A stretch of DNA of 64,000 bases from Trichosphaerium sp. ATCC 40318. Lineage: Eukaryota; Protista; Tubulinea. Shown in pieces: positions 1 to 33,422 of the stretch (its first letter is position 1; every line of letters begins with the position of its first letter). The position numbers were made by a program, and so were the translations under genes. The notes under the pieces are model-generated. The model saw only the letters and a list, made by a program, of their open reading frames with translations. It did no database searches and had not been told where the DNA came from. Location: positions 727,303 to 791,302 of the forward strand of contig JALMLS010000015.1 in NCBI GenBank assembly GCA_038496445.1, read 5' to 3'.

Positions 1-319
1 ACCTTGTATAAATGGTGATGTTCAAGTAGTAGCCAGCGATTGTGTTGGTTATGAACAGCAACGCTCTCCTACAGGTCTTGATTTGTTAATTGTCACGAGC
101 AAATGTTCTGGTGATACTACCATACCAATAGTACTTGGTGTAACTGGTGGTTTCTTGTTTGTAAGATCCACTTGGTTTCTTTTGCATTTACTTATTTTCT
201 ACTAGATTTTTGTAGCATTCATGATATCTGTATTTGTCATCAAACCTCTCAGAACAGCTATAGTACCTTGGTCATTGAGAACTAGACAAAAAGAAGCGAA
301 AATAACACCAATGAACTAA
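1..319 (+). CDS. 3' end of a type-A surface protein (TM helix + VPWSLR tail); 5' part lies outside the window
   Basis: Near-identical to 5107-5422. Reads PCINGDVQVVASDCVGYEQQRS...IPIVLGVTGGFLF|intron|IFVAFMISVFVIKPLRTAIVPWSLRTRQKEAKITPMN*. Confidence 0.85.
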
Positions 320-545
320 AGAATGCCATTACCATTTCACCACGAAAGAAAAACTTACAAGGGTAAAAACTAAATAAAGGAACGGGGTCACCGTTGGCTA
401 TATTTTACTCTAAGATTTATGTTTATTTCGCCACAAAGATATACCAGAGCGTACCTTAAAGTGCCATCCTTAAAATAGCGTCAACACGTGATAAATTACC
501 CGAAACAACACGAAACAACACGACCCTCCAAAGAACGATAAAATA

Positions 546-890
546 ATGGTAAACACAGTGGAGGTGCTGTTGGTAGTCTCAATATTGCTATTCCCATGTA
601 TGTTATTACGTTAGATGAGTTTTTCGATTCTAGTGAAATACTTGAAACACCAGACTTAAGCGTTACTTCTGCACCAGTTATGGGCGCTTTGGAAACACAC
701 AATACAACGTATTATATTTTCGCTGCTTAAGAATTCACCGGTGAGTGATTAGCTATATTAGACGACGTAAGTCTAATACAAAAACAATACTTAACATAAG
801 TACAGGTTCCATAGATGTAGGTAGAATAGGTTCAGCGTTCACAGTACTTAGTTCTACGTGTTTTTTACATGCATCAATAAATGAGATTGG
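546..890 (+). pseudogene. Truncated, internally deleted copy of the type-B gene at 5617-8380
   Basis: Same promoter and ATG as 5520-5620. Several deletions remove the first acceptor and about 500 bp of exons. Homology ends near 890, where unrelated DNA begins. Confidence 0.85.
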
Positions 891-1554
891 CTCTCATTCT
901 CATATAAGATATGTTATAAATATAAAGCCTTACTGCCAGTGTTGGCACCCAATTCACCTACGCTGTATTTACCAGTTTTCAAATGTTGAAGTTAAGGATA
1001 TTTATCCAGGAGAATCTCATTGACAGCTATAAGTTTCTCTGCATGCAGAGTTGGTTCTAATGAGTTAAAGTAAATGATGTGTAGGAAATAGTGGTATGGC
1101 TACTGCGATAGGTGTAAATTTGGTAGTGCGGCCATTGGCAATGCTGCGTTTTTGCTGAGAACTGCCAGAGATCAAAAAGTCAGCATCCAATCATATTAGC
1201 ATACTATTGGTTGGTCAGTCGGCTAAAGCTAGAGTCTGCTCCTACTGCAACAGAGTGGTGATACATAGGTCATTCAGGAAGTGCGTGTTCACAGTGTGTT
1301 GTTTTCCCGACTACGAGGTTCCGAACAGAAGGTTCACAGTTGCCAATCTCCCAGAGTTGACAGAGATTGTTCACAGCCTGCTTTACCCTGATGCCTGTGA
1401 AAAATACAAAATGGCGTATTCTGAAATGTACTTTCAACTAGCCAATGAACATTTCAGCTTCAAGCAAATGACAACACAACTTAATAAATAATTTTGGTAT
1501 TCAAAAATGGCTTGTTTTTGTTCAGTCTACTTTGCTACAGGTTAAAACTCGTGT

Positions 1555-1935
1555 CTAGTGCGACTCAGTGCACCGTTGTACTCATACAGCATTATGTTCA
1601 CAGTGGTGAGTCAACTTTAGTTCAGTCATATGCCTGAGTTGGGTTAAAATCAACACTGAGTCATCAGTCAACAGATGTATTAGTTTATTTTCACTTTCAA
1701 TCTACAGCACTTGACAACACTGACTTTGAGACTCATTGTGGTTGATGTCATGTACATGTTGAGTCAGGTGAGTCTGGTTTTGTCAGGGTTAAAAACAGAC
1801 CTGAGTGGGACTCACCCTTTATGATGGTGCTCATATGTCACCAAATAATTTCGGCTGACGGCTGACTTGACTTCAGTCGTTTAACACTATACCAAGTAGG
1901 CTCCGTTTTTAATAACTGAGCCATCAGTGGCAATG
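1555..1935. repeat. Cluster of TGAGTC/GACTCA motifs, possibly a decayed DNA-transposon subterminal region
   Basis: At least 7 TGAGTC/GACTCA copies in both orientations between ~1560 and 1815, plus CTGAC variants to ~1935. Confidence 0.45.
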
Positions 1936-1959
1936 ACTTAAAAAGGCATTGGTTTTATT

Positions 1960-2770
1960 AATTATATTGGTTGCAGAAATGGATTGATATATGGTTATTA
2001 TTTGGTTTCGAGTGGTTGAAGACGCTACGGTTAGCAAGAAAAAGCCTGGTTTTTGAAGATATGCAAGGGAGTCAAGGCCTAGACCAGTGCTTTTTTTTCT
2101 GAAACGTCTCTCAGGTTGGATTTTCCAAGGTATTTTGGCGTCTGCTCTGAGTAAGTCGGCTCCATTGCATCGCACTCTTTTGAGGATTGTTGGGTCTACT
2201 ACTGTAGCGTTGGTCACAAAGGTAATACCTAGGTTAATGACTATTTATGATTGTGGCTTTTCGATAAACATTAAATTTTCTGAAGCGGATAAGGCGAGAC
2301 CAGCTGCATGTCTTCTAGAGATTTCTTTGTTTTGTTTAGTGTTGTTGAGATTGAGGTTAATATGTATGCCTAGGTCTTTGTAGCGAGGAAGGAGACATGG
2401 TTATCACCTACTTTAGGAGGTGGGTATAGGTGGGTTGGAGCGGATCTGTTAATGTGATTTCTTGGCGTTAATTTTCATCCCATAAAAGGAGCACCATCAT
2501 TTCTTCATATGATTCTGCAATGATTTTTATATCATCATACGCTATTATAGGTACTCAGATGTTGGTGAAAGGATTTTGTAGCCACAGTTCATATTTTCAA
2601 GTTCTTTGATTAATATATTTGCAAAGGTGGAAAGTATTGGGCTGAGGCCATCGCCTTGTTTGACGCCTTTCTCAGTGTTAATGGAATTTTGCCAACTATG
2701 ATGTGGCGGTAAGACCTTTGTGCCACATTGCTGTTACGTTCTTTTTAGAAACCGTATTTGCTGTGGAATA
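1960..2770 (-). mobile_element. Degenerate non-LTR retrotransposon (LINE) reverse transcriptase fragment
   Basis: The minus strand gives KGVKQGDGLSPIL (~2635-2670), IAYDDIKIIAESYEEM (degenerate YADD, ~2500-2545), YKDLGIHIN (~2357-2382) and KSTGLGL in the correct RT motif order, with frameshifts and stops. Confidence 0.85.
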
Positions 2771-2837
2771 GTATTGACCAATCAAATACGCTTTTGGACA
2801 GCGAAGTAATTTAATTTGTATCCACGTTAACTCGAAT

Positions 2838-5422
2838 ATGGTTTGTACACTGGGTGCCTATTTAACAATATCAGCGTCATTAATATGGATAACAGGTAAA
2901 TATAGCAACAGGTGTAGTTAATTTAGTGATTTATTTTTTTTTGGTAGTGTTCGCACGTGGGGCGCTAGAAGATGAATTTTTTGACTCCAATTGGGTGATG
3001 GAAACTAAACACATAATGAGAGAAAATGGAACGACGGAAATAGGATCAATACGAACAGCAGACGCTACTTATGTCATCTTTGTGTCACGTGCTAGTAAGC
3101 GACACTAATTCAATTTGATTTTTTTCTTTTTCTGAGTGTTTCGATACTCTACAATTCTAGATATCGCATATACGCTTCAAATCGTCCAAATTCTCTAAAT
3201 TTGTTTCCTCCAACAAAATTTGAACGATATTGCTGTACCTGAGATATCTAGAATTCTAGATTATCTAGATATTTGAAAATAAGGTGCCTTTCATATGGCA
3301 TAATATACCGCGCTGTACCATATGAACGTGGTTTTGAAACGTGACTTTAATTATCTTGAATTATCTAGTTTATCGGAGATATTTAACCATCTCCGTAGCA
3401 AATAATCTAACGTTGGATGTCGGAGTCAGTATAGCAGTAACCACCATACAAGGTAATGGTTCAATCATCACTTTTAATTGGTACTAACGTTTTGAAAAGA
3501 TTGGCGTGCTGGAAGTCGAACTTTTGAACCATTATTTGTAGCGAATGCTTCACATGTGAAAGTCCCAACTTTATCAAATTTAGTACACCAACCTGAATTC
3601 GTTTCGGTGTACAAAAGTATAGACGGAAGTTTGCGAGTATTGTTTTTACGTTTGGACATAAGTACAAAGGTAGGCGAGAAGACTACGGAAACCAACCTTA
3701 CCTTTTTTTTGTGAAAAAGACAATTGAAGTTACCAACGACACTCTATTTCAAGAAGAAATGGCTAACTCGTTAGACGCTTCAAGAAACTCAATTGTAGAA
3801 TGTGCGACATACACATTCATTGTTAGCGCTAACTCCTCTTTTTAGATAAAGTGAACAAATACTTGCTTCATTGTATTGTACAGTTAGGACCTTCTTACAC
3901 TTACATTCTTGAAAATGGATTGGACCCTGTATTAATTGGATGTGCGATTCATTGTTGTTACTTTAATATATCACTGACACATTTTTTAAAGTTGATAATA
4001 CAAGTATTGTTGATAGTTCACTTGTATTCGTTAATCAAAGCTGTTTTGTGGTTGCATCAGTTCGCCAAGGAACTCTGAAATTCACATACTGGAATAACTC
4101 CCTTCCTGTACAGTTTATAATATTGGCGCCACTTATTCATACATATTTTAGGCAGTTGAACAAGATTCAATACGGCTCTCACAGGTAGCACAGAGAGTAT
4201 ATTTGAGATACAACTTGGATCAAAATGTTCTTCATTTGCGAGTGGATGATTTGAAGTACACTTACTCAGTCATAATCACATCTACATGTGGATCAGCAAC
4301 GTTTGTGCAGTCAGATATTTTCGACAGGGTTCCTGAATTATCTGCCATAAGCGTTGGATCTTCTACAATCTCTCCATTTGTCTTTCTGTATTTCTACCCA
4401 AATATGACACAAAATATTAAGTACTCATCAAATGTTACCTTGGTATGTCAGTCTTACCCTATCAGATCCCACTAATGATCTTCAAGGAATCAGTCATTGA
4501 GAAACAGTTATCGATGAACTTGCCTAAATATGCTATTAGTGGTATTATTGACAAACATAGTTGTGTTCTGTTTGTACGTTTTCAATGAGGGCAAAGCATT
4601 TGTAACAATTGATAAATAGATATTGGCGTCAGCAGAGAATATGCAATACAATGCCTTCATTAAACCTCAGGATCGTCTATTCGATTGTATACGTGAGTAT
4701 CTATTCCATAACTTAGCTACCCTTATTCATGTTCTAGCAATTACTCCAGCACCTACGAGCTCAAGAATTGTAAACAACACCTTAGAGTGTATGAATAGCA
4801 CTTGCCTACAGTGCCTTTTGGCAGAGTGTACATACAATGGAAGTATCTATATACCTAACACTGTTGCTGTACGTATAACTGAGCCTACAGTGATTGAAGG
4901 TGATTTCACAAACAATGGCGATGTGATTCTAGTGGTTGACGATGAAACTACACTTTCTGTGAAAGGTAATGATATCATCTACAACGTAGAGTTAGTGTAT
5001 TAATTATAACTTTAGGATGCTTGGTGATATTGTCTAATAGTTCATTTATTGTTGACATATCCGGTGTTGACACATCATCTGAGCAAGTAATCAATGTTAT
5101 TTCATCACCTTGTATAAATGGCGATGTTCAAGTAGTAGCCAGCGATTGTGTTGGTTATGAACAGCAACGCTCTACCGCAGGTCTTGATTTAATTGTCACA
5201 AATGAATGTTCTGGTGATACTACCATACCAATAGTACTTGGTGTAACTGGTGGTTTCTTGTTTGTAAGATCCACTTTGTTTCTTTGCATTTACTTCATTT
5301 TCAACTAGATTTTTGTAGCATTCATGATATCTGTATTTGTCATCAAACCTCTCAGAACAGCTATAGTACCCTGGTCATTAAGAACCATAGCAAGAGAACC
5401 GAAAATAACACCAATGAACTAA
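2838..5422 (+). CDS. Type-A surface protein: signal peptide, shared N-domain, Cys module, TM helix, VPWSLR tail (multi-exon)
   Basis: All exons join in frame through GT-AG introns, from MVCTLGAYLTISASLIWIT to ...VPWSLRTIAREPKITPMN*. Paralogous to 19443-22106 and 25595-28235. Confidence 0.8.
3128..3390. mobile_element. MITE-like palindromic insertion in intron 2 of the type-A gene
   Basis: The intron is ~300 nt versus ~50 nt in paralogues. It holds three ~35-bp GATATCTAGAATT(C)TAGATTATC-like units (first inverted relative to the second and third) and a TTCATATGG...CCATATGAA stem. Confidence 0.55.
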
Positions 5423-5616
5423 ATATTGTTATTACATTCCAACGCGAAAGAAAAAACTTCCTATATTTTACCCTAAGATTTGAATATGTTTATTTCACCT
5501 CAAAGTATGTACTATAAGAGCGTACCTTAAAGTGCCATCCTTAAAATAGCGTCAACACGTGATAAATTACCCGAAACAACACGAAACAACACGACCCTCC
5601 AAAGAACGATAAAATA

Positions 5617-8380
5617 ATGGTAAACACAGTGGCGCTGCTGTTGATAGTCTCAATATTGTTATTCCCATGTATGTTATTACGTTAAACTAGAAATTAACAT
5701 TGTATTACAGTGGCGTATGCGCAAACGCCGTTAGATGAGTTTTTCGATTCTAGTGAAATACTTGAAACACCGGACGTTAGCGTTACTTCAGCACCAGTTA
5801 TGGGCGCTTTGGAAACATACAATACAACGTATTATATTTTCGCTGCTGAAGGATTCACTGGTGAGTGATTAGCAGCTTTTGTTTCTGAATAAGCGTTATT
5901 AAACTAGCTATATTAGACGGGCCAATAGACGGCACAGTACTCCGAGTGACAACGTTAGATGGTAATCTTTTTTTAGTAATCTATATTTCACTGACTCGAA
6001 GTAGATTGGCTTGCTGGAAATCTAACGTTTGAGCCTTTGTTCATTCCAGGCATTAAATCCCCTGAGCTCACTCTTTCAATGGATATGAGCGATTCTCTTA
6101 CGTTTGCTATGTTACACACAGACGGACTAGAATTTAGAGTTACATTCTTCAGCCTCAATCTAGCAGCGAAGGTGCAATATCAACCTTTTTTCTGATCCGT
6201 ACTAACGTGCTTCTTTAGAGCATTTCAGTCAATTCAACAGCATTTCCAAATGTAGACTCTAGTATTGTGAAGTCACATACATTCCTCTCAAGATTTGGTA
6301 CGACAAAACTATGATTTAGGCTCTAACTGATTGCTTAGGTCAATACTTTGTTAATTTTCATTTTGTGGAAATTGGCGATTTTGCAGATACCTTTGAGTTA
6401 AGCCAAACAACAGGACCTATACTAAGTACCTCTAAAACAAAAATAATAATAATTGTATACTTAATGATTACAGGTAAGGTAGATGTGGGTAGGATAGGTT
6501 CAGCGTTTACAGTACTTAGTTCTACGTGTTTTTTACATGCATCAATAAATGAGACTGGTAAGGATATCAAGTTCACATTCTCTGAGACGTTTCTACAGAA
6601 CGTACGTGTTTGACAACTTTGTTTGATCAAGTGCTAACATTACTTCAAGAATGCTACACAATATGTATTGAATCAAACTGAGGAAATAAGAAAGATAGTA
6701 TTCCTTGACTACAATCCAGCCACGTCATCTTTGGTTATTCAAATTGATACTTTGGGTTCTACAATTACAGCACTGTTTGATGTGTCCCCTGTAACATGTG
6801 AAATGGCATTTTTTATTTCAGAGTATCAAGAATCTCGTGATACAGCACCATCAACAGCAGTAAACACGTTTGATATATCACCAGTATCTCCATTCGTGTA
6901 CTTGCGCTATGACAGTGACAACGATACAATGATATTTTCTTCTACTGCGCAACTGGTACAGCTATAACAGTAACACAAAACTAAATTGCATAGGATAATC
7001 CACTAGAAAAGAACGTACAAAGTGTTGAGACTATTTACCCGTCAGTGTTAGAAGGTATCCTTGACAGAAACCTATGTTATCTTGTCGTACGCTTTCCTTA
7101 AAAGTGATTTGTCTAACACTAAAAACAAAGGTATTACTGGCAGACCAAGAAGAATTCATTGCGTTTATTGAACCCCGTGTAGACTTATTCACTTGTACTC
7201 GTACGTAGGTTCCTTCCTTATTTGGAATATTTACATTTGCCAAGCGAATACTCCGCAGCCTACAAGCCTACCTCCTTTTACCTCTCAACCTGTTTCTCCA
7301 ACTGCTGTACCATCACCTCCTCTACCACTCATCCCTCCTATCACGCCACCGCCAACTACAGAGCCTCCAACAACGAATGCACCTGTTGTACCTCGAGCAC
7401 CTATTCCAAACCCATTCCCAAATGTACAGCAGTTTTTCCTATTGGTATTGTCACAACTTATTATTCGATAGATTGAGCCTCGACTTGATTGTATCTTGGA
7501 ATTAGGCAACACATTCACTTTAATTCTTGGATGGAACACCATGGTAACAATATTTGGTAACTAAGCTATTGACACTTTTGAAGGAAACTCAAACAATTAT
7601 GGTTGATAGAGGAGAAAATAATATGATGACTGCTGGTGGTGTATCAATAACAACTCAGCCAACTTCGTTTAATGGAAGCGCTCCTTTTTATCCTGCATCA
7701 GGACAGTTCAGATTCAACTTCTCAGGTGGATCAGGGATGTGGATTCTCGGAAGAGGAGTGATCAACTTTGACAGCTCTGATCCAGATACAAGGTGTATTA
7801 CTGATGGTACGATTTTCGCAGCATCCTTAACCTCAATACTACTTTTTAGAGGCATCAGTTGCTTTGACAATCAACGAAGCATTTCCTTTGGATGACAATA
7901 CTCTCACTGGTATTCAAAATGAAGTTTCCAAAGGAATGGGTATTGATCCAAACATTACAGAAGTAACTCAACAACCAGTTACAAACAAACGTCAGGCAAG
8001 CACGACCGTTACTGTCACTGTTGCGTGTACGTTTAATTCGCTATCACGCTTTATATTCTCACATATATATTTTTAGCAACAAGTACCGTTCAACCTACAA
8101 CTGTGGTTGCGAACTTCATAAACAACGCTACTTTGGTATCACAGACTACAACTAACATAGAGACATCAGTCAATGTTATGGTTGAGGTAGGATAAGAACA
8201 ACAAATTCGTTAACTTACGCTTTTTGTCTATAGGATGTCTCTACTCCTGAACCTTCAACGGTTGTACAAGGCACAGACCGACCTTTACCACCTGTAGCAA
8301 CACCAACGCCAAGCAGCTTTGTTGTATTGCAACCTGCATTTGTAACTATAATTATGTTTCTCATACTAGCCGTTTTGTGA
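5617..8380 (+). CDS. Type-B surface protein: shared N-domain, Pro-rich stalk, beta module, KRQ-containing module, probable GPI signal
   Basis: In-frame multi-exon model from MVNTVALLLIVSILLFP to ...SSFVVLQPAFVTIIMFLILAVL*. Hydrophobic C-terminus with no cytoplasmic tail. Confidence 0.8.
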
Positions 8381-8572
8381 ATTAAATAAACCTGCACGTG
8401 TAGAAATAACACAATTTTATTTACCTTCAAAGATTTTTCTCAGTTCATTCTGGTAGTTCCGAATCACCACATTGTCACAAAGAGGCGAGGTGTAAAGATT
8501 TCAAGAAAGCATGCCTTAACCACGTGATCTGCACAAAATTCCTTTTTTCTCCATAAAAAAACGAAGAGCACA

Positions 8573-11391
8573 ATGGCGAAGAGTGCCACCATTGTCCTTA
8601 CCTTCTCTATGTTGCTTATACCTGGTACTTTGTTTTTATGTTCGGCTAATTAACTAACGCTTGTACAGCTCTTTACGCGCAAATCTTGCCCTTTAATGAG
8701 TTTTTTAATTCAAGTGGATTAGTAACTGGACCAAACGTAGCTCAGCTTGCATTATTAGAGATGGGCGCTTTAGAAACTCAAAACACAACATATTTCATCT
8801 TTGCTGCCAATGCGAGTTAGTAATTTTTCGTTCTCTTTTACAAAAAAGGTTTGATAATTCATAATACCTAGACGAAAATGGCACAAACGGTATAGCTGTA
8901 CAAGTGACGACAATCAACGGTAATCAGCAACATGTAACAGTAATTCAGATCTAACATCCATTAGATTGGAGTGCTGGAAACCTAACATTCAAGCCTTTGT
9001 TCATTCCACAAACGAGAGATCCGAAACTGACCACTTCAATTTCTATTAACGGTTCTACAACATTTGCTATGATACACAAACCTATGTCCGCATTTAGTGT
9101 ATCGTTCCTTCAACTTAATCTATCAACAAAGGTGCTGACCACAACTATTTTCGACATTTCTCATATTTTTTCTAATCACGTTCAAGGTTGTATCGGTTTC
9201 GCAAACCTATTCGTTTGGTGGTCTAATAGACTCTCAAGGCGTAAGCAAACATACATTTACATCATACAAGGGTACAATATTTAAAGAATAAACCAACCTG
9301 ATAATAGGTAGGTAAATATTACGTTAATTTTTTTTTCAATGAACGAGAAGGTCTTGCTGAAACATACGAGCTTCAAGAACAATCTACCCCCAAACTCGAT
9401 GCCAGTAATGCGGTCCCAATTTATTTATCCGCTGATAAGTTTAGGTGTAAATCTGTTTACATTCGATGCTTGGTTCACAGTTATTGGACCAAACTGTTTT
9501 TTGCATGCCTGGTTTGACAACTTGAATACGATTTCCTTCACATTCGTTGATACATCTTTGAATACTGTACGCTTGTCAACGTTATTAAATGTGACTAATT
9601 TCCAAAAATACAAGACCACCAAACAAAAAGTGTTCAATGAAACAGCACCTGAGGAAATAACAGATATTGAGTATCTTGAATACAACTCATTCACTAACTC
9701 TTTGGTAATCCAGCTACATTTGCAAAATGCAACTATTTTTAAAGCACTATTTGAAATGGACAAACAACAACACTGTAAACATGCGAAATTCTTAGAGAGT
9801 CATCACGTGATATTCGACAATGGAGTAGCAACAGCAGTAAACACTCATGATATATCATTTATTTCTCCATTTGTTTATATGCACTATGATCCATTTCCTA
9901 ACACTACTGTGGCGTTTTCTTCAACTCCGCAATTGGTACAACAATAACATGGTAAACAGAATTTTGACCTTGTTGCATTAGGACAACCTAATAACGAAGA
10001 ATTTGCCAATAGACTCTTTTTTTGTTCGAAAAGTACAAGGCATTCTTGATAGACACCACTGCATTCTTGTTGTACGTTTAGATTTTCTAATCTTTAAAGA
10101 TTTTAACAATATTATTGAAGGCCCTGATTGGAAATCATGCAGCCCAGTTCAGTGCCCTTATTGAGCCTCATGATGACTTGTTTAATTGCATTTGTAAGTA
10201 CCAAGATTATTCTCGTATAGGCGCTTAAGTTGCTTAGCAAATACTCCTCCTCCAATCTCTCTGATGCCAATCTCTGTAACTCCTACTTTGTTACCTACCA
10301 CTACTCCAACGCCTGTATCGCCAACTGTTGCGTTTACAACCCCACCACCAACTACAGAGGCTCCAACGTCCAATCCACCTGTCGCTCCATCAGCAAATCC
10401 ATTTCCAAATGTACATTTACTGCCTTTGTAACTTTGTTGTAATTGTTATTTGTTAGATTGTACCTAGACTTGATTGTATCTTGGAATCAGGCAATGAGTT
10501 CATTGTAATTCTTGGATGGAGCACCATGGTAACCGTACTCTTCACTATTTGTTGGAAATTACTGACATGTGAAAGCGTACATTGAGCGTAAACGTTGGCG
10601 AAAATAATATGGTTAGTGCTGGTGATGTATCAATAACAAATCAGCCAACTTCATTTTCTGGAGACGCACCGTTTTACCCTGCGTTGGGACAGTTCAGGCT
10701 CACTTTCTCAGGTGGCTCTGGCATGTGGATTCTCGGAAGAGGAGTCATCAACTTTGATAGCTCTGATCCAGATACAAGGTGTATTACTGATGGTACCATT
10801 TTCCCTAACTGCACAATCTTAACCTCACTTTACTTGTTAGAGGCTTCAATTGCTTTGAGAATCAACAAAGCGTTCCCTTTGGATGACAACACTCTCACTG
10901 GCATTCAAAACGAAGTTTCAAAAGGAATGGGTGTTGATCCAAATATCACAGTGGTCGATCAGGAATCATCAAACAAACGTCAGGCAAGCACAACTGTTAC
11001 CATTACAGTCGCTTGTACGTCAATCAGTAAAATCCACTTAAATATTTATGTTTTTAGCAACAAGTACCGTACAGCCTACAACCGTGGTTGCAAACTTCAT
11101 AAACAACGCTACTTTGGTATCACAGACTACAACTAACATAGAGACATCAGTTAATGTTATGGTTGAGGTAGGACAAGAACAAATAATCATGATACCTATG
11201 AACTAATTTTGTTTTCCTTTTAGGATATATCAACTCCTGCGCCTTCAACGCTTGTACAAAGCACAGACAGGCCTTTAACGCCTGCGGAATCACCGGTTGT
11301 ATCAGAGCCAAGTAGTTATGTTGTTTCACATCCTTCGTCTCTACTTACGTTTGTGCTAATGCTGATACTTTGTATGCCTTTCCAGCTTTGA
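8573..11391 (+). CDS. Type-B surface protein paralogue
   Basis: Same exon architecture as 5617-8380. Runs from MAKSATIVLTFSMLLIP to ...SSLLTFVLMLILCMPFQL*; the C-terminal exons are near-identical in DNA to the first copy. Confidence 0.8.
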
Positions 11392-11558
11392 TAATAAACA
11401 CATACTTATCAGAATTGACATGTACTGCTGAATACACTTTAGGTGTAATGCTCAGGGTAAAAGGTGTTTACAAGAAGATTCATAATGGTATTTAAAACAT
11501 GTTTTATCACGTGGTATTGTTACAAATAATACTTTGAGTTTTTTCTGAATAAAAAAAT

Positions 11559-17875: not shown

Positions 17876-17878
17876 GCG

Positions 17879-18367: not shown

Positions 18368-18671
18368 AACAAAGACGTAAGAATGTATCAATAAAAAGAT
18401 CTAATACAAACACAAGTTGCTGAGAATATCCACAACAGAGCGCTTAATCCGGTTGCTTGTCCACACAAACAAACAAGTGGCTGTTTTGCGACGTTAAAAG
18501 CCGTCACCGAAAAAGTAACTTACTGATATTAGCTTTGACACGTGATTTCTAGAGATATAGCACTGAATATTTCTTGTTATTGCAAATAAAAAGTATTGCC
18601 ACCTAATAGAAAAGTGTCGGTTATTCTCACTTTTATAGCAAGTACTCGCTTGTTACAGTACATTGTTAATG

Positions 18672-19330
18672 TCATTGCTTTGCGTTATGACAAGTAACTA
18701 TAGTATGAAGAAAACAAGGATTGTTACTAGACAGCAACTCCAACATCTACCACTTCTTCGTTCAAGTCTAATTCTGTCTATTTTCTGGTCTAAATCATAC
18801 AACATGCACTTAATTAGAATGTTGTTCCTCTCCTTGGGTTCTACCTTTCTCTCTTAAGCACCAATGGGTGAAAAATACCTGGAACAAAGATACAAAGTAA
18901 ATCAGATGGCTGATGCATAGTAACAGTCGGTTTTTCCCTCTGAAGAAGCCTCTTCACAAGTTTAATGTAAGTACAAGACAGTAAACAGCGAGTAGTAGTA
19001 CCAGTGTTTATAAGATCGAGGTGTACTTTAAACCCTTCGAAAGTAAGGTTTTCAAACTCGATTGGTGCAGCAAGTATGAGCAAGTTCTATGTCGTGTAGA
19101 TTTCCAACATGTGAAATAGCTTCAACTGTCGCATTCAAAGTAGGTTTTACCTTGGAAAACTCAAGAATTTCATTAACAAACGCGTCATTGCCATCACACG
19201 CAGTGTACGCATCATAAAATGTCGGTAACACTGAGACAAGACCAGCAAAAGCTTTAGGTATGGTTAGAACTATAAAACCCAAACAGATGATTTTCACGTG
19301 AACTTGTTATGTCGGTACCTAATCCAAAGG
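18672..19330 (-). pseudogene. Multi-exon hypothetical gene lacking an in-frame start
   Basis: Exon-like segments (AFAGLVSVLPTFYDAYTACDGND..; EPKERNNILIKCMLYDLDQ..) with GT-AG introns. Upstream DNA is the 3' UTR of the inverted-duplicated type-A gene. Confidence 0.35.
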
Positions 19331-19442
19331 CAATAAAAATACGTGAAAACGTTACAATCAAGACTGACTAGAACCCTTTCTTTTATTCATCTATAAGCAC
19401 AAACCACACGTGCCTCAAAAAAAAGAAATATAAATTAAACGT

Positions 19443-22106: not shown

Positions 22107-23439
22107 GTTTGTGTTTAAGATATTATGTAACCTAATTTGGCCTATGCAGAAGAAGGAAAAAGTCAACTAGGATCTAATTTCAGCGCTCTGTCAGATCTGA
22201 CGGATCTGGCACTTCTGACAGACCTTGTAAATCCCACTTTTAAAAGACCTGCCCTCGCGCCTGTCCGCTAATCCAACCGTTTCACGTGATTTAACAAACC
22301 AAATTGGTATTTACATATTAGACACTGGTGACGTGTACAAAGCCTGGAGCAACATTGGTAGAGTTTTAGGGGTTTTTTAACGTTAGTACACCTACTTTGG
22401 TGTTTGATGCTGCTAGGGCGCCTTTGTTAGCGTGGGGTAGGCGCTAGAGTAGCGCTAGTAAGTTATACACGTTGATTTTTGAAGCAAAATACAGCAAACA
22501 ATGTTGTTGATGCATTCTGACCGTCTTTGGCGGTAATACGATAGCTTTGTAGGACCATACCTTTTTAATTCGCTTTTAGCTCATCGCATACTTCCTTGGT
22601 TTGATCTCACCTTGTACGGTGTGCGTAGGTAAAACACTGTGATCACTTTGCATGGTATTAAAACTGACAGATCATTATTATTAACTTATGTGACAAAAAA
22701 AGATATCTATCAGTAACAAATTTCCCTGCTCTAATAACTCAGCGCCCTTGTTTCATTTTATTCTGATACTCCGTATATATCATGCCTAAAAGCATACTTT
22801 TGGCGTGATCATGGTTTTTGGAAACAAGCTGGCAAACTCACTTTACTGACCCATTTTAGTGAACAAGTGCAATAATATTATATCTTTTGTCCAAGCACCA
22901 CTTTCGTAGGTATAAAGGCCTAATGAAATTAAGTTAAAAGATTAAAACAGCACCTTAGTGGTGCAGAATAGTATAAAGTTGGGGTACAACAAAAGTTAGA
23001 ATTTTTTGCCTGCTTTTTCGAATTTGTTACATGCTACACAGACTCTTGAATTCAAATTATACTAAATTCTATTTGTAGGCTCTTTCTATTGCCTGAATAA
23101 AGCTGCAGACTTGAATTGAAAACTGGTAGTAGCTACAGGCATTACCATAGAAATTGTTTTTTCTGCTTCCAAATTTGGCTGACACTAGGTACTGTAGTTT
23201 TATCAAGAGTGTTATATACTTGAACAAGCGTCTGGGGAGTGTGACACTCCCCTAAACACTGCAACATTGGTAGGGGTGTACAATTGAGCAACAATTTCTC
23301 TATACAACCAATAACATAAGCACTTTTAGCTGGTAGTGTATCACTTCAGCTTAGTTTTACACTTGTCTCTGTTTGCTCTTTTAACGTTTTTTTGGACCGT
23401 TATACATCCAACAGTAGTTTTGTGCAATGCACCTCACCG

Positions 23440-23630
23440 AAAGAATAAATCCAACACCATCTAAAGCTGATGAAACTCATTAGCCCTGGCATTACCTTTA
23501 TCACTAACTCTACAGTGATGACAATATCGCTGACTTACTGATAACAGACGCTAAAATCCATGGAAGATCAAACCTGAAAGACCCTCTATCAAAAACACAG
23601 GGTTAGGGCTAGACTCCCTCATAGACCTTG
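23440..23630 (+). mobile_element. Second remnant of the same LINE family
   Basis: Translates across frameshifts as LISPGITFITNSTV..ADLLITDAKI/PWKIKPER..NTGLGLDSL, matching INLGITFVTNATV..ADLLRADAKIPWKIQPER..STGLGLDSL at ~2070-2240. Confidence 0.8.
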
Positions 23631-23735
23631 GTATTACAATGTACATTTTCACACCTTTCTTGATATGGACAATAATTAAGTTACTTAAAATAAAACACGT
23701 TGTTTATCATCAATTACTCGCAAAGTGCATCGTGC

Positions 23736-24541
23736 ATGGCAGTTAAACGAAAGGTTCCATTTCAGTTTTATGTTTTAGACGACACTAACACTAAATAGAA
23801 CGCAAAGACGAACGTAGAACGAGCATTTACAAACCTACTAGACATTCCCGTAGAGCTATTGCTTGATATCTACGATAAGGACCAAGAAGTATTCACAAAG
23901 CTACCGTTGCTTGCAAAGCTAACAGCAATGGTAACCAGATATGATAACGAGTTGAAAAAGCACAGTAAATGGATACAGCGACAACAAAAGGGAGCTTTTA
24001 TTTTACGCAAACAACGCTGGAAACACGGTAAACTTCACGGAAAGTCAAAGAGATTCTATGAGAACAGTCAACAACTATTCAAAGAAACTGATTTTGTAGA
24101 CGGTGTAAGAGAAGGAAGCCACAAGGTGTGGTTCGCAAATGGTATACTAAAGAAGCATTTACATAGTTTTTGCTAAAGTGTTATCATTACAGCAAGGGAC
24201 AGCTTGAAGGAGGTTACAAGGAATGGTATGCGAGTGGACAATTGTCCGAGAAGTGTTATTATGAAACGGGCGAAATGGAGGGGAATTATAAGAAATGGAA
24301 TGAAAATGTTCAGCTAGTGGAGCTGCGTCAATACCAATTTGGACATCTTAATGGTACTTGTGAAAGATGGGATGAATATGGCAAAGTGAAGTCACTGGAA
24401 TACAGGAATGGTCATCGTTGGAAAGCTCAAGAAAGTCTAAGTTCCAGCGAGTCTGATAGTGACAATTGGAATGATAAACAATCGGCATATGATTGGTTCT
24501 ATGGGCGTGAAGGACACGAGTGGGACACAAGCGAATTGTAG
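23736..24541 (+). CDS. Basic exon + F-box-like + MORN-variant repeat protein, frameshifted near 24165
   Basis: MAVKRK|NAKTNVERAFTNLLDIPVELLLDIYDKD..LPLLAK..TRYDNELKKHSKW, then MORN repeats in two frames. Confidence 0.75.
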
Positions 24542-24733
24542 ACTGAGAATTATGTAGTATAAGATGACACATCAAGCACTGTTGGAATGCTTTTAGTTGT
24601 AATAGCTAATGAGCTGTATTACGAAGACTCTGTACTTCAGTTCTAGAGTAATAGCAAAGACAACAGATTTTCCGTGATTTTCATGCGAGCTGCAGTGCAC
24701 TCAATTAATAAAAGAAACTTTTTCCAACTCCTG

Positions 24734-25410
24734 CCTTTTTTGCAGACGCACCAGAAACTGGTGCAATCTGTTTGTTGAGTGTAAGAGAGTACAGTAGTAA
24801 TAGTTTTAGCGCCTATATTCTACTGTTGAAAAAAACAAACGTTTTATTGCAGCTACGCTGCATATTTCAGAGAATAAACGAGTCTAAAAGACGAGTTTGT
24901 GAACGCACAAAGTGCATTCACTAATAATTATGAAGACAAGTGTATCTAAAACGCAAAGCGTTTTGGTACACGAGTAACTAACTAATAACAAATAAAACAA
25001 GACAAGTTAAAAAAGCAACGCTTTTGTAAACGAGTCGCAACACTCTTTATTCAGCTTGATAGGAATTTCTGTTACAAGATAAGAATGGTTTTCTGTTGTA
25101 CCATTCTACAAAAAGCGTGAACGCTTTTTCATATGCTGAGCGGGATTTTGTTGGCAGCAAGCTGTTTGCGGATTGGCGTAAATATTCTTCCTCCTCTGGA
25201 CTGAAGCTGCGTTCTGCAGCCATACTTAAGGGCAAAATAACTGAATTAAAGCTTAAGTTGCCAGTATTTATTTGAAATACAGCTTCTGGTGCATCTACAA
25301 AAAAGGTACCACTCGTTCAAAAAAGCTCCATTCACCACTCGTTGTTTTTAGGCCCTAATTTACTCGTACTTCGTACTCGTTGCATAACTGGGCCGAAAAA
25401 CAACTTGTGG
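24734..25410 (-). mobile_element. Crypton-like (tyrosine recombinase) non-autonomous remnant
   Basis: 27-bp inverted repeat (24734-24760 / 25280-25306, 3 mismatches) around ORF 25047-25235 (SANSLLPTKSRSAYEKAFTLFVEW, resembling a YR N-terminal SAM-like domain). An adjacent 21-bp hairpin spans 25335-25410. Confidence 0.55.
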
Positions 25411-25594
25411 CAAAAAGTAACAAAAGAAAAACTACAAGAGATTTTTGACAATACCGCGCTTATAGATTATTTAGCTATCATTAGCGGGAATGTTAAAATT
25501 CTATATCAACAATCTTTAACCCTTTTGGGATCCAAGTTGACTTTTTCCTTCGGCACGTGCCAAATTAGGTCACGTGATATCTAAAACACTAAGC

Positions 25595-28235
25595 ATGCGC
25601 ACAGCTGATTTGTTTTTGTTAATATTTTGCTCATGTGTATTGATATCAGGTAAATTGAACTAAGTTTTATAAAGTGTACCACACCAACCCTTTTTTTTGC
25701 TAGTCTACGCTATTATACCACCAGAAGATGAGTTTTTCGCATCGAATTGGATCATGGAGACAGAAAACATTACTAGAGACAATGGAACCACAGAAATAGG
25801 ATCAATAAGTACAGCAGACGCTACTTATTTCATCTTTGTCTCACGCGCTAGTAAGTGACCGTTTTTAATTACACAATGGGTTTTTTATTTAAGAAGCCTT
25901 TAGTATTTAATATAATGCCGAACGTCGGTATACAAGGTGTAAGTGTAGCAGTAACAACAATACAAGGTAGCTCACATTCCACTGATAAAAACGTGATACT
26001 GACACGTGAAAGATTTGAAAGCGGGAAATAGAACTTTTGAACCTGTTTTCGTAGCAAGTGTTGCAGATGTCAAAGTGCCAACCTCCACAGATCCAACACA
26101 TCTCCCTGAATTTATTGCAATGTATCGAGCTCCAAGTGGAGAATTGGGCATCCTTCATTTTGACATAGATATATTAAACAGCGTAAGTTAAAACCTAACT
26201 AAAACCGCTTACAACACATGTTAACCTGCTTGTTTCAATCTTCAAGTCAATCATATTAAAAACCAAAGTACTGATAGAGCCTGACGTCGTAGACACGACC
26301 ACAGTTACAAAGTACTATCCAATAATACCTTGTACGTATTTATTATGGTGTTTGTTTAAATTTCATACTTACAACGTATGAAGTTGGTAATGATTACTTG
26401 GTTGATTGTTATTCCACTTCTTCTGAGAGCGCACAACTTATTATAATCAGCAACGGACTAGAATCTCGATTCCATCTATGTATGTTAATAGATCGGCTCA
26501 AACCAAAGCTTGCTTAAAATACTATCAAACTAACGTGTTAAAGCTGATAACCCTCGTGATGTGGACACTTCAGTTGTTCTCCTGAATGATAATTGTTTTC
26601 TCAGAGCATCAATTCTTCCTTTGGACAACATAATATTCGTTCTCTGGAACGGATCACAAAGTGTACTGTCATTTCACTAGTCCCAATATATTTCACTAAC
26701 ATTTTGTAGCAAGTTCCAAATTACAACTTCAATGCTGGTTCTGTTATAAAAGAAGTAGAATTAGAATACAACTCAGAAGAAGATATTATTCATATGCGTG
26801 TAGTAGACATAGACTTGAACTATTTCAGTGTACAAATCGAGCATACACAATGTGACTCAATATCTGAAAAAGAAAAACTGTTTTTTATACATGAAGAGGT
26901 GTCTGCAATGACATCAGAAAGTGTTTCTTCATCTCTAAATTCTCCATTTGTTTACATGTATTTTACGCCTTTCGTAAACTTGATGAATTTCTCACCAAAT
27001 AATAATCTAACAGGAGTACGTTACAGTTTTGTTAATGGTTATTTTGGCCTTCCTCATTTTTTCTTTCATTGAAGTCAAGTTGACTTACACCATTAACTAG
27101 GGTATTCAGAAACAAATGATGTTTGATGTACGAGAATACTCCATTAGTGGCATACTTGATAGGCATAATTGCATTCTTGTTGTACGTTTTATATGCATGT
27201 TAAATCTGTTTCTGACCATTTTTGTTTACAAGGTGCTGCTGTCATCGGACAATAATCAACAAACTGCTTTTATCAACACTGATAGTAAACTTTTCAGTTG
27301 TGATTGTACGAACAACTCTGTTTTTTTCATTCGAGAACTTATACTTTTCTAGATATCATCCCTCCAACCCTCCCTCCTAGTCTCGCTCCAACTCCACCGA
27401 CAAATACGCCAACATCACTTGCTCCTGTTATTCAGCCAGTCAGCTCACCAACAATTGAACCATCAGTTCCACCAATACCTCCAAACAAAACTATTGAGTG
27501 TATTGATAGCACTTGTCTTGAATGTGATCCCATGACATCATGTGTTATCGCAGCTGATGTAATTGTTGCCCCTGATATTTCAATAAGTGTCAGTACGCCC
27601 ACAGTGATTGAAGGTGATTTCACAAATGGTGGTGAGGTGATTCTTGTATTTGATGATGAAGAAAGTACCACTCTGTCAGTAAAAGGTAAGTTCTGTATGA
27701 ACTTTGTTTAGTTGTACAAAATGCTGTAGTGTGCCCACAATTGACAATCTCCATTTTAGGATGCTTAGTGATACTTCCAAACAGTTCATTTGTTGTTGAC
27801 GTATCAGGAGTAGACACATCATCTGACACTGTGATCGACGTTATTTCATCACCGTGTATTAATGGAAGTGTTGAAGTAGTCGCTAACGATTGTGTAAATC
27901 ATGAACAACAACTCTCGAGAACAGGGTAACATTGTTGTCAGTTTTTTGTTTTTAATTAACTTTACAAAGTCTTGCTCTCCTACTACTTACAGACGAATGT
28001 TCAGATGACAGTATTTTACCAATCGTGCTTGGCATAACGTTTGGGGTGATATTTGTAAGTAACAGCTCTTCAAGTCATTCTTCATGTACACTTTCTTACC
28101 CCTTTTTCTGAACAGATTTTTATCATATTTATCATAGCCGTATTTGTAATTAAACCTGTGAGAAGAGTAATCGTACCTTGGTCTCTCAGAAAGCCCAAGC
28201 AATCCAGTCGATCAACACTTGAACTTGAGGATTGA
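25595..28235 (+). CDS. Type-A surface protein (right arm), 14 exons
   Basis: Full in-frame model from MRTADLFLLIFCSCVLIS to ...VIVPWSLRKPKQSSRSTLELED* using GT-AG introns. Confidence 0.88.
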
Positions 28236-28724
28236 ACATAAGAGCAGTGTAAACGTTTAATTTATAGTCTTGTTTTTTGTAGCAGAAATGTTTCAGTTCT
28301 TAAACAGTCACGTGGTTTATGCTTAAAGGTGAATAAAAGAAATGGTTCTGTTCAATCTTGATTTCTTACTAAATTTACCAGTGATGTAATGTCAAGTTGC
28401 CCATTGAAAGGGATCTGTACCAACGTCCGTTACTCGATATCTTTTTTTAGCAAGTTTCGACATTGATTTGCATTTATTTTATTTGTCATAGTATGAGGAC
28501 ACTAGCTTGATAGAATATTTGTGCCGCTACTATTGCATAGTTCCAATAAGTACTGATTTAGGCTTTCGAGTGAAAAAGTTGTGATACAAAACCATACACT
28601 TGTCACGTGTACTTGTGATACTGTGAACCGATTGATATCTCTGAAGTAAAAACACCAAGCTGACTATCTTTCAGCTTTAAAAAGTCACCACAAAATTACA
28701 GAAACTAAGATTTACTTCGTCGTA

Positions 28725-30156
28725 ATGTGGTTCTTTATACAAATAGCTGCTCTATTGCTTGTTCTGATCATTTCAATACGATACGTTTTAAAACCACGTG
28801 ATAAGCCAAGAAAACGACAAAAAGGTGATGCTGTATTCGTAACAGGCTGCGAGTAAACAACTTTGTTCCAAATGTAAAAACAACTGATATTTCTACTTCT
28901 AGCACTGGCTTTGGTAACCTCCTTGTTAAAAAACTTGATAAATTAGACTACTGTGTATTTGCTGCTTGTCTCACGGAAGATGGGGCTTCAGAGCTAAAAG
29001 AAGATACCTCAGATAACGTACATACAATACAATGCGATGTAACGAAGCAGGTACCTGCTTTGAAACTACTGATAAAACCCTAGCTAACTTTTCTTTGTAC
29101 TTTGCTTTAGGATGACATTGACCGCGCCTATGATACTGTTTGCGACGTTTGTAAGGAAAAGAAATGGCGCCTAGTCAGCTTGGTCAATAACGCCGGCACT
29201 TTACAAGGCTTTATATTTGACTTAACGCCCATCTCCATCTTTGACAGAGTCTTTTCAGGTATCCCTTTTTAAAAACCGTTCACAAAAATCTTAACACGTG
29301 ACATTGTAGTGAACTTCTTTGGGTTGGTGAAGGTTACCAAGACATTTTTACGTGCGTGAGGATATAATTAGGAAGATTTATCCTTCTCAAAGATTGTTTA
29401 CAGCTTTGATCAAGAAGACAAGAGGAAGACTTGTTTTCGTTACAAGTTCAGGCGGTTTTCAACCCCTTCCATTCTTCTCAGCGTATATACCATCTAAAGA
29501 ATGTCTGAAATATTTTTATTACGGCTGACAGAGTTACCTAGTACGCTGCAGAGGGATTTTGTGGATTGTTAAGACGAGAATTAAAGCACTTTGGCATCAA
29601 AGTGTGCATTATAAGTAAGCAAGTTAACTCTACAAACTCTAGTTACTTAACAAAGTGTTACAGACCCAGGTGGTGCGAAAACACCTCTCACAGATAGGAC
29701 GCTTGATAACTCTCTGAGAGGTACATTTAAAACATAAAAAGAGATCAAATTGGTTGGTATTTACTTCAATTGTAGCTTATGATGAAGGAGATCCTGCAAT
29801 AAAACAACAATATGGAGATGTGTTTATGGATGAAATAAAAGTACTTTTTGACCCCTCAGGGGATAGAACTGGCGATCCTAGCGTTGTTGCTGATGCAATG
29901 GTAAGTCTAAAGACCAAAATATAAAGTGATGAATTTAATCTGTTGTTAAAGGTACATGCAGTCACTAGCGAGAACCCAAAAACAAGGTAGAGCTGGATTC
30001 ACGAGTTTTTTTTAGAAAGTTGAATTAATATTTGTTAGATATGTTGTTGGGATTGATGCACATATTTTCAGAGCACTAAGTCTTCTTCCTGATGAATATA
30101 ACGATTACTTGTTGAATTTCATATTCCCAGTACCTAAACCTGCATCAGAACGATAG
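28725..30156 (+). CDS. Short-chain dehydrogenase/reductase (RDH/17beta-HSD/BDH1-like) with N-terminal membrane anchor
   Basis: VTGCDTGFG, LVNNAG, VNFFG, catalytic YIPSK, LRRELKHFGIKV, NPKTRYVVG. Requires one GA-AG intron. Confidence 0.9.
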
Positions 30157-31086
30157 AACCACGTGTCTAAACACTAGAATTCGCACTTAATAATAAAAGG
30201 CTTTACCATGATATAACCAACTGTAGTATGAGGACGTGTGCTTAAGGTAGTGACTCCACAGAGTATTTGTGGTATTCACTACTACAAGCAATATCCAATA
30301 TTATTCTAAGTTTCCTACAACTTGTGCCAGCTTAAGGTGTAAATTTAACCTAACCCCTTTTGTTTGTGAAAGTAATTATTTAAGTCAGTCTATACGTTTA
30401 CTGTACCTTTGATTTATCTTTGCAAAGGCATGTATGCAAACTCTAAAACAGACATCAAAGAGTACCAATACGGTAATAACAATTGTCATTGTAAAAATAT
30501 TGGTGTAAGTTGCTTGACATTGGTACTCTCTTGCTTCGTACTGATGAAGGCGTAGATGCTGATGAAGGTTCCATATCAGACTTGAGGCTTATTTGAGATC
30601 TCGAATACAGCAATATTATCATTTTGAAATCCATCAGCAGTAACAATATTGCCTTTTTTAGGCATTGTAGCCGGCTCAACAAATTGATAATTTACTTGTA
30701 CGATTACCTTTAGACTGTTCTAAATGACCGTTTGTTAGATTACAGTCCACACAAAAGAAGCTTGTCCTAAATCTAAGGAACCATTTCCTCAGGACTGTGT
30801 ACAACAGAGCCAAATACTTGCTAAGACAGAACTTAAGACGAGCTTTCTGGATTTGCATATGAATTTAAAGTCTATACACTTTATCATAGTAGTTTATATC
30901 TTCGTGCATCACCATCAATAGTTAAGCATTCCAAGTAATAACAAAGTAAAGTCGCTTTTTTTTTTTTGATTTGTATAGTAAGTTAGGACGTGGCAACAAA
31001 TTGCAAGAAAAGGAAGCGCTACAATTAGTTGATTAGTCATGTTTTTATTAATAATTTTTTTCTACTGTTGACAGTGGTATAGTGAG

Positions 31087-33422
31087 TTACAATGTTTCTC
31101 TATTAACTTGGCTCATAGCAACTGACTCTCTTGCTTTTCTGAGAGACCACGGTACAATTGCTTTTCGAAGAGGCTTGACAACAAACACAGCCACCATGAA
31201 GACAGCAACCAGCTATATAAACGCAATGAGTACTATGAAGTATAAAGCATCACCTACCAACAAGAAGCCAAATGTTATTCCAAGTCCTATGGCCACACTG
31301 CTACTAGAACACTTATCTACAATTAACAATAACCCAAGTCCTGTAGAAGAACGTTGTTCTTCATGCTCAACACATTCTTCAGCGATGACTTGTACAGTAC
31401 CATTGATACAAGGTGATGAAATAACATTGAGTACAGTGTTGGATGATGTGCCTACTCCTGATACGTCAATAGAGAATGAACTGTTTGGTAGTATCTCTAA
31501 GCATCCTAGAGTTAAGTAAATATTGAAAGGATACTGAGGATTGTTTTCTCAAACCTGTTACAGAAAGAAGTGTGCTTTCATCATCTACAACTAGTATTAC
31601 TTCGCCTTCACTTGTGAAATCACCTTCGAAAATTGTAGGTGTGGTTATTATTACAGTAGCATCAGAAGGAACGAAAACGTCTCGTTCAACTGAACATGCT
31701 GCGCTTGTAGGATCACATTGAAGACAAGAGCTATCCACGCACTCAACTGCAAAAAAAAGTTAGTTAAGCTGATGACTAAACGAGTACTTACGGATACAAT
31801 CAAATAAGTCATCACGTGGTTCAATAAAAGCACTGAATTGGTCAATAGTTGATCCAAGCAAAACCTAAATAAAGGTAAAAAATAGAACTGTACAAAGCAA
31901 CGTACAACAAGAACACATTTGTGTCTGTCAAGAATGGCTTGTAATACAGCATTAGAACGCTCTACAGTTGGAACTGCCTTCTGCAGGGTGTTGTTCTGTA
32001 GTAGTGGTTAAAAGTCTATTAACGTATTGTGCGTACCAAATGTGGACTTGAAGAAAACATAGTATTGCTATCATTAAACAGATTGTACTGAATATATACA
32101 AACGGAGAAACAGTTGACACATTGTAAGTGTTCGCGGCTATTGATGACCCAGTATCCGCTACCTCTGTATACTGTTCTAGGAATATCACATGTCTACAGT
32201 GTTGTTGTGTGTCTATTTCAAAGAGAGCTGTAACAATACTTCCGTTAAACATTCTCAGTCCGATTACCAGAGAGTTTACAAATGAGTTGTATTCGAGATA
32301 CTCTATCTCTGATATTTCCTCTGTTTGATCCAACCCATCTTGGGTTGTGGTCTTGTAGTAGGAATTAGTTACTGTTTGTAAAAAAGGCTGCTAAAGGTCC
32401 CTTAAATGTATTGTTAAGCGAACGTACAACATTTAATACTGTATCAGATAAAGTGAAAAAGACGCTCGTCTCGTTTATCCATGCGTGTAGAAGACACATT
32501 GGTCCAACAACAGTGAACAATGGATCACGTGTGGCACTACCAAGTAAGAAACCTGAAAAGAAATAAGAACAATATAGCAGACTTCATATGACCGCGTACT
32601 GCTAGCGAGTTTCACTTTTCTGGGGCTTAGTTGAATCTCAAATGTTTGTACAAGACGTTCATTCCGGCAATAAAAATCGCTGTAATAAATACCTAGATTT
32701 TATCAATATCACGTGCACACAAATGTGATACCTTCGAATGATACAAATGTATACGAATCTACACTTTGAGGGTCTAACGTGACCGGGATTTCAATTGGCG
32801 GATTAACATAGCTCAGCGTGGCAGACTAGAAAAATTTCTAGTAAGCTGTAGGAGAATTTGCGTAACAAGTACCTTCCGATAGGTATCAAGTACCAGAGTC
32901 GATAGAGTAAATATTCCTCCTACTCGGTGCATCATATCTACCTTCGGAGAGATGCTAAAATCAAATGAAGTAGAGGGAAGTTTCAGATCCTGATATTTCG
33001 ACCTGAACAAAGGCGCAAATGTTGATCCTCCAGCGAGCCAATCTATAAACGAAGTATTTTTGAGTGAAATGAATTAATAAAACCCGTGATTACCGTCGAT
33101 AGTTGTGACAACTATATCTACACCTGATATACCTTGTACCTCTGCGAATAGGATTAGTGGTTTGGTCAAAAACGAAGAAGATGAAGAAATAAGTACCAGC
33201 GTTAGCAGCAAAGATAAAATACGTTGTATCACGTGTTACAAGGGCGCCCATTTCTGGTGGTTGTAGAGTACGACTGGAGTTAAAAAATTCGTCGGTAGGT
33301 GGTATTTGAGCATGTACCACAACAAAATAACCGATTAGCTACAATCTTTTTATCGAGTGCTTACCTGGTAGTAAAAAGATAAAACAAGATAGAACAACAG
33401 TGATCACCATTCTCTGTGGCAT
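31087..33422 (-). CDS. Chimeric surface protein: type-B-like N-domain with type-A Cys/TM/VPWSLRK C-terminus
   Basis: EEISEIEYLEYNSFVNSLVI matches the type-B copy at ~9650; the end (CVDSSCLQCDP..VPWSLRKARES) matches type A. The first intron ends in TG. Confidence 0.8.

Follow-up and report, generated by a model that had tools for sequence, protein, structure and literature searches.

The window that we analyzed, the last 64 kb (64,000 nucleotides) of the 791-kb contig C9 of Trichosphaerium sp. ATCC 40318 (C9:727303-791302), carries in its first 33,422 nucleotides part of a tandem gene array in which one variable head is mounted on either of two anchors, a transmembrane (TM) anchor (type A) or an anchor resembling a glycosylphosphatidylinositol (GPI) attachment (type B). 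On balance, and with moderate confidence, we read the region as encoding lineage-restricted modular cell-surface glycoproteins that serve as adhesins or receptors. A preliminary description of this DNA had proposed a modular family of secreted surface proteins whose single variable head comes with either of two anchors, and that architecture held. The family was also said to be unrecognized, and it has no known-family match in Pfam, in PDB sequences, or among 1.84 billion proteins, its own product (P0001) apart; literature searches likewise found no description of such a family.

The host genome (70 Mb, 37% GC) has short GT..AG introns, and we recovered the copies by BLASTP with segments of open reading frames (ORFs), by tblastn with two curated proteins, and with a custom protein-to-genome spliced aligner. 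These searches returned all eight copies or fragments previously counted in positions 1-33422, and a regular-expression scan over the six frames of the window located every quoted motif in its expected place (DEFFxS, TY(F/V)IF, SPFVYxxY, GILDRHxC, AFIxPxxxLFxC, and VPWSLR). Most models start with a Met, continue into a hydrophobic leader, and have no internal stop. As had been claimed, the introns of the head are conserved, with six positions and phases common to 13-15 of the 15 models; the head itself proved longer than the ∼350 amino acids (aa) first given, at about 375-400 aa. Two reference models were curated manually. The type A reference, A25595 (positions 25595-28235, + strand; 14 exons, 632 aa), for which the spliced aligner returned an identical structure, encodes a signal peptide (25595-25649), the head (25704-27305), a Pro stalk (27353-27492), a Cys module (27493-27685 and 27760-27925), a linker and TM segment (27970-28054 and 28116-28160), and a tail with VPWSLR at 28173. 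The type B reference, B8573 (8573-11391, + strand; 15 exons, 698 aa), has introns of 43-76 nt that are all GT..AG, and its exon 9481-9935 (151 aa), which served as a search query, combines two ancestral head exons that have fused. Its anchor cassette (10238-11391, + strand) consists of a Pro stalk (10238-10410), module 1 (10457-10528 and 10576-10792), module 2 (10841-11014), a Ser/Thr stalk (11058-11167), and a GPI-like signal exon (11224-11391) with the terminus ...SHPSSLLTFVLMLILCMPFQL. Ab initio dynamic-programming gene models, built from codon log-odds with or without paralog support, gave wrong exons and were dropped.

Independent evidence for the type B architecture came from a public protein. 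When a profile built from the largest exon of the head in 15 paralogs (alignment A2) was run against 1.84 billion representative proteins, there was a single real match (E 1e-33), the 647-aa protein P0001 from the Joint Genome Institute (JGI), which derives from a lone 2,171-bp contig. Spliced onto the window, P0001 follows 15 GT-AG exons of the type B gene B5617 (5617-8380, + strand; 16 exons, 694 aa), with 641 of 647 residues identical (99.1%). This agreement independently confirms the 16-exon model of B5617, whose exon 1 was added separately and which runs from signal peptide and head through Pro stalk, module 1, module 2, and Ser/Thr stalk to a GPI-like tail; the existence of an intron-free public product also supports expression of the gene and validates the type B architecture down to its two modules and tail. 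Word searches with P0001 and a region search with its residues 406-600 returned only P0001, and a metagenome scan with P0001 gave no relative in a collection from which records of the host genome were possibly left out.

The head is a Cys-poor, all-beta domain of ∼380 aa, and each protein carries 7-16 NxS/T sequons. In Pfam scans of 10 exons and of full-length P0001, no family matched; a PDB sequence search with the head found no match, and in the ESM Atlas no cluster scored above 0.89 with either the head exon or P0001 residues 1-345. The preliminary description had named a match of the head to a well-characterized enzyme family as counting against it, and no enzyme family matched in Pfam, PDB sequences, or the 1.84 billion proteins. 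Most near-invariant columns of the head hold F, T, G, P, S, N, C, or V; only two Asp are among them and no His, Glu, or Lys, a composition that does not resemble a set of catalytic residues. We folded P0001 with AlphaFold2 from a partial alignment (A4, covering residues 37-117, 190-291, and 505-562; four exon groups could be added), which was partial because MAFFT misplaces exon fragments; an earlier MAFFT alignment of 82 exon fragments along P0001 (A3) had been discarded with its fragments scattered. The resulting model had a predicted local distance difference test score (pLDDT) of 48 and an all-beta head, of which only residues 200-290 were confident; these residues resemble single beta-propeller blades, with scores at noise level, and hhalign comparisons between head exon-group profiles found no internal repeat, only orthologous overlap. 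Two Bacteroidetes proteins with Ig_3/I-set repeats matched the head profile (E 1e-5 and 7e-4; pairwise BLASTP E 0.009), but we rejected Ig homology of the head, as the signal was a two-strand motif summed over repeats and P0001 matches no Ig family. The all-beta head appears to be new: among the 1.84 billion representative proteins, P0001 aside, it has no convincing relative.

The type A C terminus was as first described, with a seven-Cys module, one strong TM helix (Kyte-Doolittle 2.6-3.4), and a tail with the pattern (K/R)P(L/V)R..(I/V)VPWSLR. The tail is 25-45 aa long and contains a conserved juxtamembrane motif and no signaling domain, so the proposal that type A is a "signaling form" was not upheld. 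The Cys module is common in this genome (130 exon-level matches on 34 contigs), and the exon encoding the TM segment and PLRKAIVPWSLRK tail also occurs on C93, C131, C160, C2, C47, C26, and in a second cluster on C9. With a 37-row alignment of the Cys module (A5), AlphaFold2 folded an intron-less copy from C93 at pLDDT 83 and a predicted template modeling score of 0.75. The best structural matches of this model were all right-handed parallel beta-helices (IgA1 protease, pertactin, Pet, and Ag43), Foldseek returned mostly the same fold class without significance, and the model has the three-sided, short-strand solenoid form that defines the fold; the Cys module is thus predicted to be a right-handed parallel beta-helix. 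Sequence identity to the passenger beta-helices of autotransporters (the IcsA autochaperone 3ml3, pertactin, Ag43, and IgA1 protease) is only 8-13%, and unlike them the Cys module has seven conserved Cys, is encoded in a eukaryotic gene in which a phase-1 intron is conserved, and is followed by a TM helix instead of a beta-barrel. Pfam searches with all 37 module sequences found no autotransporter passenger, Pmp-type, or other family, and a PDB profile search with the module gave nothing at E <0.2. In other Cys-module families (C93, C26, C20, C84, C210, C322, and C273), we observed that the conserved phase-1 intron, at G|GC, in many cases lacks stops and keeps the frame, such that read-through yields a single ORF with a 14-19-aa insert; the intron has been lost only in the two C93 copies.

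The type B C terminus also matched its first description, with a Pro stalk, two modules, a Ser/Thr stretch, and a hydrophobic extreme C terminus. In B5617, B8573, m08, and P0001, we found a hydrophobic N terminus together with 14-16 terminal hydrophobic residues after ...P-S-S-(F/Y)-x-x-x-x-P, which is what a GPI signal would require. Module 2 is predicted to fold as beta-alpha-beta-beta (pLDDT about 80-88 in the P0001 model) and weakly resembles SEA-like membrane-proximal domains; against SEA-type modules such as the SorCS2 membrane-proximal domain, dystroglycan, and transmembrane-protease SEA domains, its scores are at noise level, its length is ∼58 aa, and Pfam finds no match. We considered and rejected module 1 as a homolog of the type A beta-helix module: the hhalign probability was 0.4%, and we therefore treat the apparently conserved columns in a joint MAFFT alignment of module 1 and the Cys module as an artifact. 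Exons matching the type B modules lie on 12 or more further contigs. Both anchors thus recur in other genes of the genome and are stock cassettes, and the unity of head and anchor implied by the preliminary description is not supported, since each anchor is generic.

The array is larger than its part in the window, extending 55 kb further upstream. Over C9:672-761 kb (∼90 kb), we counted about 22 members, of which 13 are type A genes, 3 are type B genes, and six or more are fragments. Strong matches to the head profiles are confined to this array, and weak, colinear head relatives lie elsewhere, on C131, at C2:517 kb, and at C9:576-595 kb (profile matches at 584-593 kb). The C131 relative (C131:155113-157884; L031:1714-4485) is very divergent, and yet by spliced alignment it is colinear over 14 exons with its motif order kept; it has a type A anchor with the tail RPLRKAVLPWSLRKPRE, and a second copy lies ∼4.5 kb upstream on C131. 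Two further contigs, C398 and C560, are near-copies of C9:720-732 kb, with 99.8-99.9% identity over the type A gene A2838 and 94.6-95.7% over its neighbors m15 and m14. These contigs look like haplotigs, in which case divergence along them is very uneven, but they may also stem from a segmental duplication of recent date.

Comparisons among the members indicate that heads and anchors have had separate histories. The median identity between type A genes is 27% in the head, 63% in the Cys module, and 60% in the TM segment and tail. In a maximum-likelihood tree of the heads, the type B anchor needs three changes, and B5617 is sister to the type A gene m05 with support of 100/99. Their head DNAs are about 93% identical with introns counted (a manual count on the alignment), and the protein similarity reaches into the Pro-stalk exon (…SPTAVPSPPLPxIPPIT) and then ends, which places the swap junction inside the stalk exon. 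Similarly, the nearest relative of the head of A31087, a type A gene, is the head of the type B gene B8573. On the tree, at least three transfers of heads from one anchor to the other have taken place. The ratio of nonsynonymous to synonymous divergence (dN/dS), from Nei-Gojobori pairs averaged over whole domains, was 0.34-0.72 between paralogs in the head and 0.32-0.48 in the Cys module, and it was below 1 in every domain and pair. Synonymous divergence (dS) varied several-fold among domains within a single gene pair, a signature of mosaic gene conversion. Between putative haplotig alleles of m15, 5-6 of about 355 head residues differ, with nonsynonymous polymorphism (pN) of 0.007, synonymous polymorphism (pS) of 0.04-0.06, and pN/pS of 0.13-0.19. 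From the paralog ratios and two further comparisons (the m15 alleles, and P0001 against B5617), which make a small sample, selection on the family looks purifying.

To explain these observations, we propose that a heavily N-glycosylated, all-beta head forms the ligand-binding part and faces ligands outside the cell, for instance on prey or substrate or in the form of glycans. The type A mount would begin with a Pro/Ser/Thr stalk, which leads to a disulfide-stapled right-handed beta-helix of ∼120 aa and a single TM helix, and the short cytoplasmic tail would open with (K/R)PLR(K)x(I/V)VPWSLR(K). As the VPWSLR motif is common to receptors with unrelated heads, it most likely docks one shared cytosolic or sorting partner. 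In type B, the head would be held at the outer leaflet of the membrane, without cytosolic coupling, by a longer Pro stalk, two small modules, a Ser/Thr stalk, and a GPI-type signal. The array would have grown by tandem duplication, with recombination or gene conversion reshuffling heads between anchors. The Gal/GalNAc lectin of Entamoeba, which has a TM heavy subunit and GPI-anchored light and intermediate subunits, is comparable as an amoebal surface adhesin system with TM and GPI components; however, we found no sequence similarity to it, and in the Trichosphaerium family the TM and GPI-like forms carry the same head and are not different subunits of one complex.

Several points weigh against this proposal. 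The low pLDDT of the P0001 model, obtained with the partial alignment, means that the head may conceal a cryptic enzyme or lectin fold. The search with the TM/tail exon gave ∼11 loci outside the array, far below the count for the Cys module, so that many Cys-module genes may carry other tails and the idea of a common partner rests on a subset. The likely omega site in type B (PSS-F/Y) is atypical at omega+2, which makes the signal only GPI-like. Domain-wide Nei-Gojobori averages could hide local positive selection.

The family could instead form a variant or protective coat, by analogy with Giardia and with ciliate surface antigens, which have variable heads on a conserved anchor; interchangeable, heavily glycosylated proteins, one or a few expressed at a time, would vary the surface or shield the cell against viruses, predators, or the environment and would not serve to bind specific ligands. 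This fits the many paralogs with conserved anchor and tail and variable heads, the mucin-like Pro/Ser/Thr stalks and many N-glycosylation sequons, the gene-conversion-type mosaics with their several-fold differences in dS between domains, and the pseudogene fragments within the array. The variant-specific surface proteins (VSPs) of Giardia have a variable head, a conserved membrane-proximal part, an invariant TM segment, and a very short CRGKA tail, and they comprise many paralogs that undergo gene conversion. The array shares this description (variable head, conserved TM segment with short tail motif, many paralogs), but VSP heads are CXXC-rich whereas those of the array are Cys-poor and unlike known coat families, the tail motif here is PLRKAIVPWSLRK, and the host is a free-living amoeba. 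In addition, the heads evolve under purifying selection, which hints that their roles in binding or structure are conserved, and a tail motif shared with receptors bearing unrelated heads points to coupling and away from passive coating. We consider a coat unlikely.

Kin or allorecognition, the analogy to Dictyostelium TgrB1/TgrC1 drawn in the preliminary description, would have polymorphic heads on TM signaling and GPI forms binding between cells to gate fusion or aggregation. Like the tgr genes, which encode amoebozoan type I surface glycoproteins with divergent ectodomains in a clustered multigene family, the genes described here form a tandem multigene array with highly divergent heads (a median of 27% against 63% for the Cys module) and with A-then-B units side by side, and the DNA of the haplotigs diverges by ∼5% in some regions but by 0.1% in adjoining ones. 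The members also recombine, and recombination within the tgr family is reported (PMC12745789, PMC13648343). Tgr ectodomains, by contrast, consist of IPT/TIG domains, and the Pfam scans of 10 exons and P0001 detected neither these nor any other domain; Tgr alleles are extremely polymorphic, whereas our two comparisons gave 99% identity (P0001 against B5617) and pN/pS <0.2 (the m15 alleles, in which few head residues differ); and the Tgr pair has no GPI form. Moreover, A and B partners bear the same head with no complementarity between them, dN/dS is below 1 throughout, the tail has no signaling domain, and the anchors are generic to many families. The absence of Tgr-type domains, the low nonsynonymous difference in the two comparisons, and the shared head on A and B all weaken the analogy, and these dN/dS, pN/pS, and identity values do not bear out a diversifying ectodomain for kin recognition. 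The preliminary description had itself named low polymorphism with uniform purifying selection as what would count against it, and the values come close to this pattern, albeit in a small sample. We regard kin recognition as improbable. Equally improbable is a surface-tethered enzyme that acts on prey cell walls or extracellular matrix, its head being a cryptic glycoside hydrolase, a lyase, or another enzyme of that sort with a beta-propeller or beta-sandwich fold. Eukaryotes commonly tether enzymes that act on walls by GPI or TM anchors, but the head matches no Pfam, PDB-sequence, or Atlas family, its near-invariant columns hold only two Asp and lack His, Glu, and Lys, and head identities down to 16-27% within one genome would be unusual for a catalytic scaffold.

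The remaining copies in the window range from fragments to multi-exon genes. At its left edge lies a type A C-terminal end (1-319, + strand, from spliced alignment), comprising a partial Cys-module exon (1-160), an intron (161-205), and a TM/tail exon (206-319) with the VPWSLR motif at 263; this gene begins upstream of the window, at C9:724,962, and its product is 85-89% identical to the end of A2838. It is followed by a type B remnant (546-890, + strand), which had been described as a truncated copy. That it is incomplete was correct, but its exact nature is that of a remnant in which the signal-peptide and DEFFDS exons are followed by an internal deletion of ∼580 bp and truncation; a single exon aligns, and the DNA between the segments matching 5107-5873 and 6457-6558 is gone, so that it is probably a pseudogene. 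The recurrence of an A-then-B unit was likewise recovered, with 82% DNA identity between 1-753 and 5107-5873 and 88% between 787-890 and 6457-6558. A2838 (2838-5420, + strand; type A, 13 exons, about 587 aa, from spliced alignment) encodes a signal peptide, head, short Pro linker, Cys module, TM segment, and VPWSLR tail; the acceptor of its exon 3 is ambiguous (3369 or 3399), and we infer an in-frame 45-nt intron at 4693-4737 from the homologous intron of A25595. A19443 (19443-22106, − strand; type A, 14 exons, 635 aa, from spliced alignment) is a diverged inverted duplicate of A25595, with a head dN of 0.042 and dS of 0.115. In A31087 (31087-33422, − strand; type A, from spliced alignment and the head tree), exon 1 (33422-33365, phase 1) could not be joined to the rest, as we found no AG acceptor in 33365-33293 (− strand) that brings exon 2 (DEFFNS) in frame; either the 5′ end is spliced noncanonically or the gene is decaying. 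Upstream of the window, m12 (67596-68962 of the larger C9 extract that we term "big"; C9:717.6-719.0 kb) has a B8573-like head with in-frame stops fused straight to a type A end, and it is probably a recombinant pseudogene.

Beside the array, the window contains intron-less genes at 34030-35157 (+), 36244-36873 (+), 41088-42553 (+), 52740-54257 (−), and 62756-63598 (−). One product has F-box-like and LRR_6 domains and another belongs to the Bles03 family, and several are MORN_2-repeat proteins with N termini that are alike. MORN_2-type ORFs also lie between upstream members of the array (big 26224-27693 and 62395-63315).

Few surface receptors of free-living amoebae are known outside Dictyostelium, and these cells must distinguish prey, substrate, kin, and pathogens. 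Under the reading that we favor, modular adhesins or receptors, the locus is a concrete case of one head placed on a TM or a GPI-like anchor through recombination in a stalk exon, and the juxtamembrane motif that it shares with genes bearing other heads offers a direct handle on a cytosolic partner. If the heads are ordinary adhesins, the result is a well-annotated, lineage-specific gene family. More speculatively, and with considerable doubt on our part, the two cassettes could be the hallmark of a superfamily, so far undescribed, with some 100 or more germline surface receptors, of which the orphan-headed array would be the largest clade. Its unrelated or fast-diverging heads would be exchanged between cytosol-coupled and lipid anchors by stalk-exon recombination, and it would provide an exon-shuffled repertoire for recognizing prey, pathogens, or viruses. 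If this were true, the family would be a useful model of how protist recognition repertoires are built by exon shuffling.

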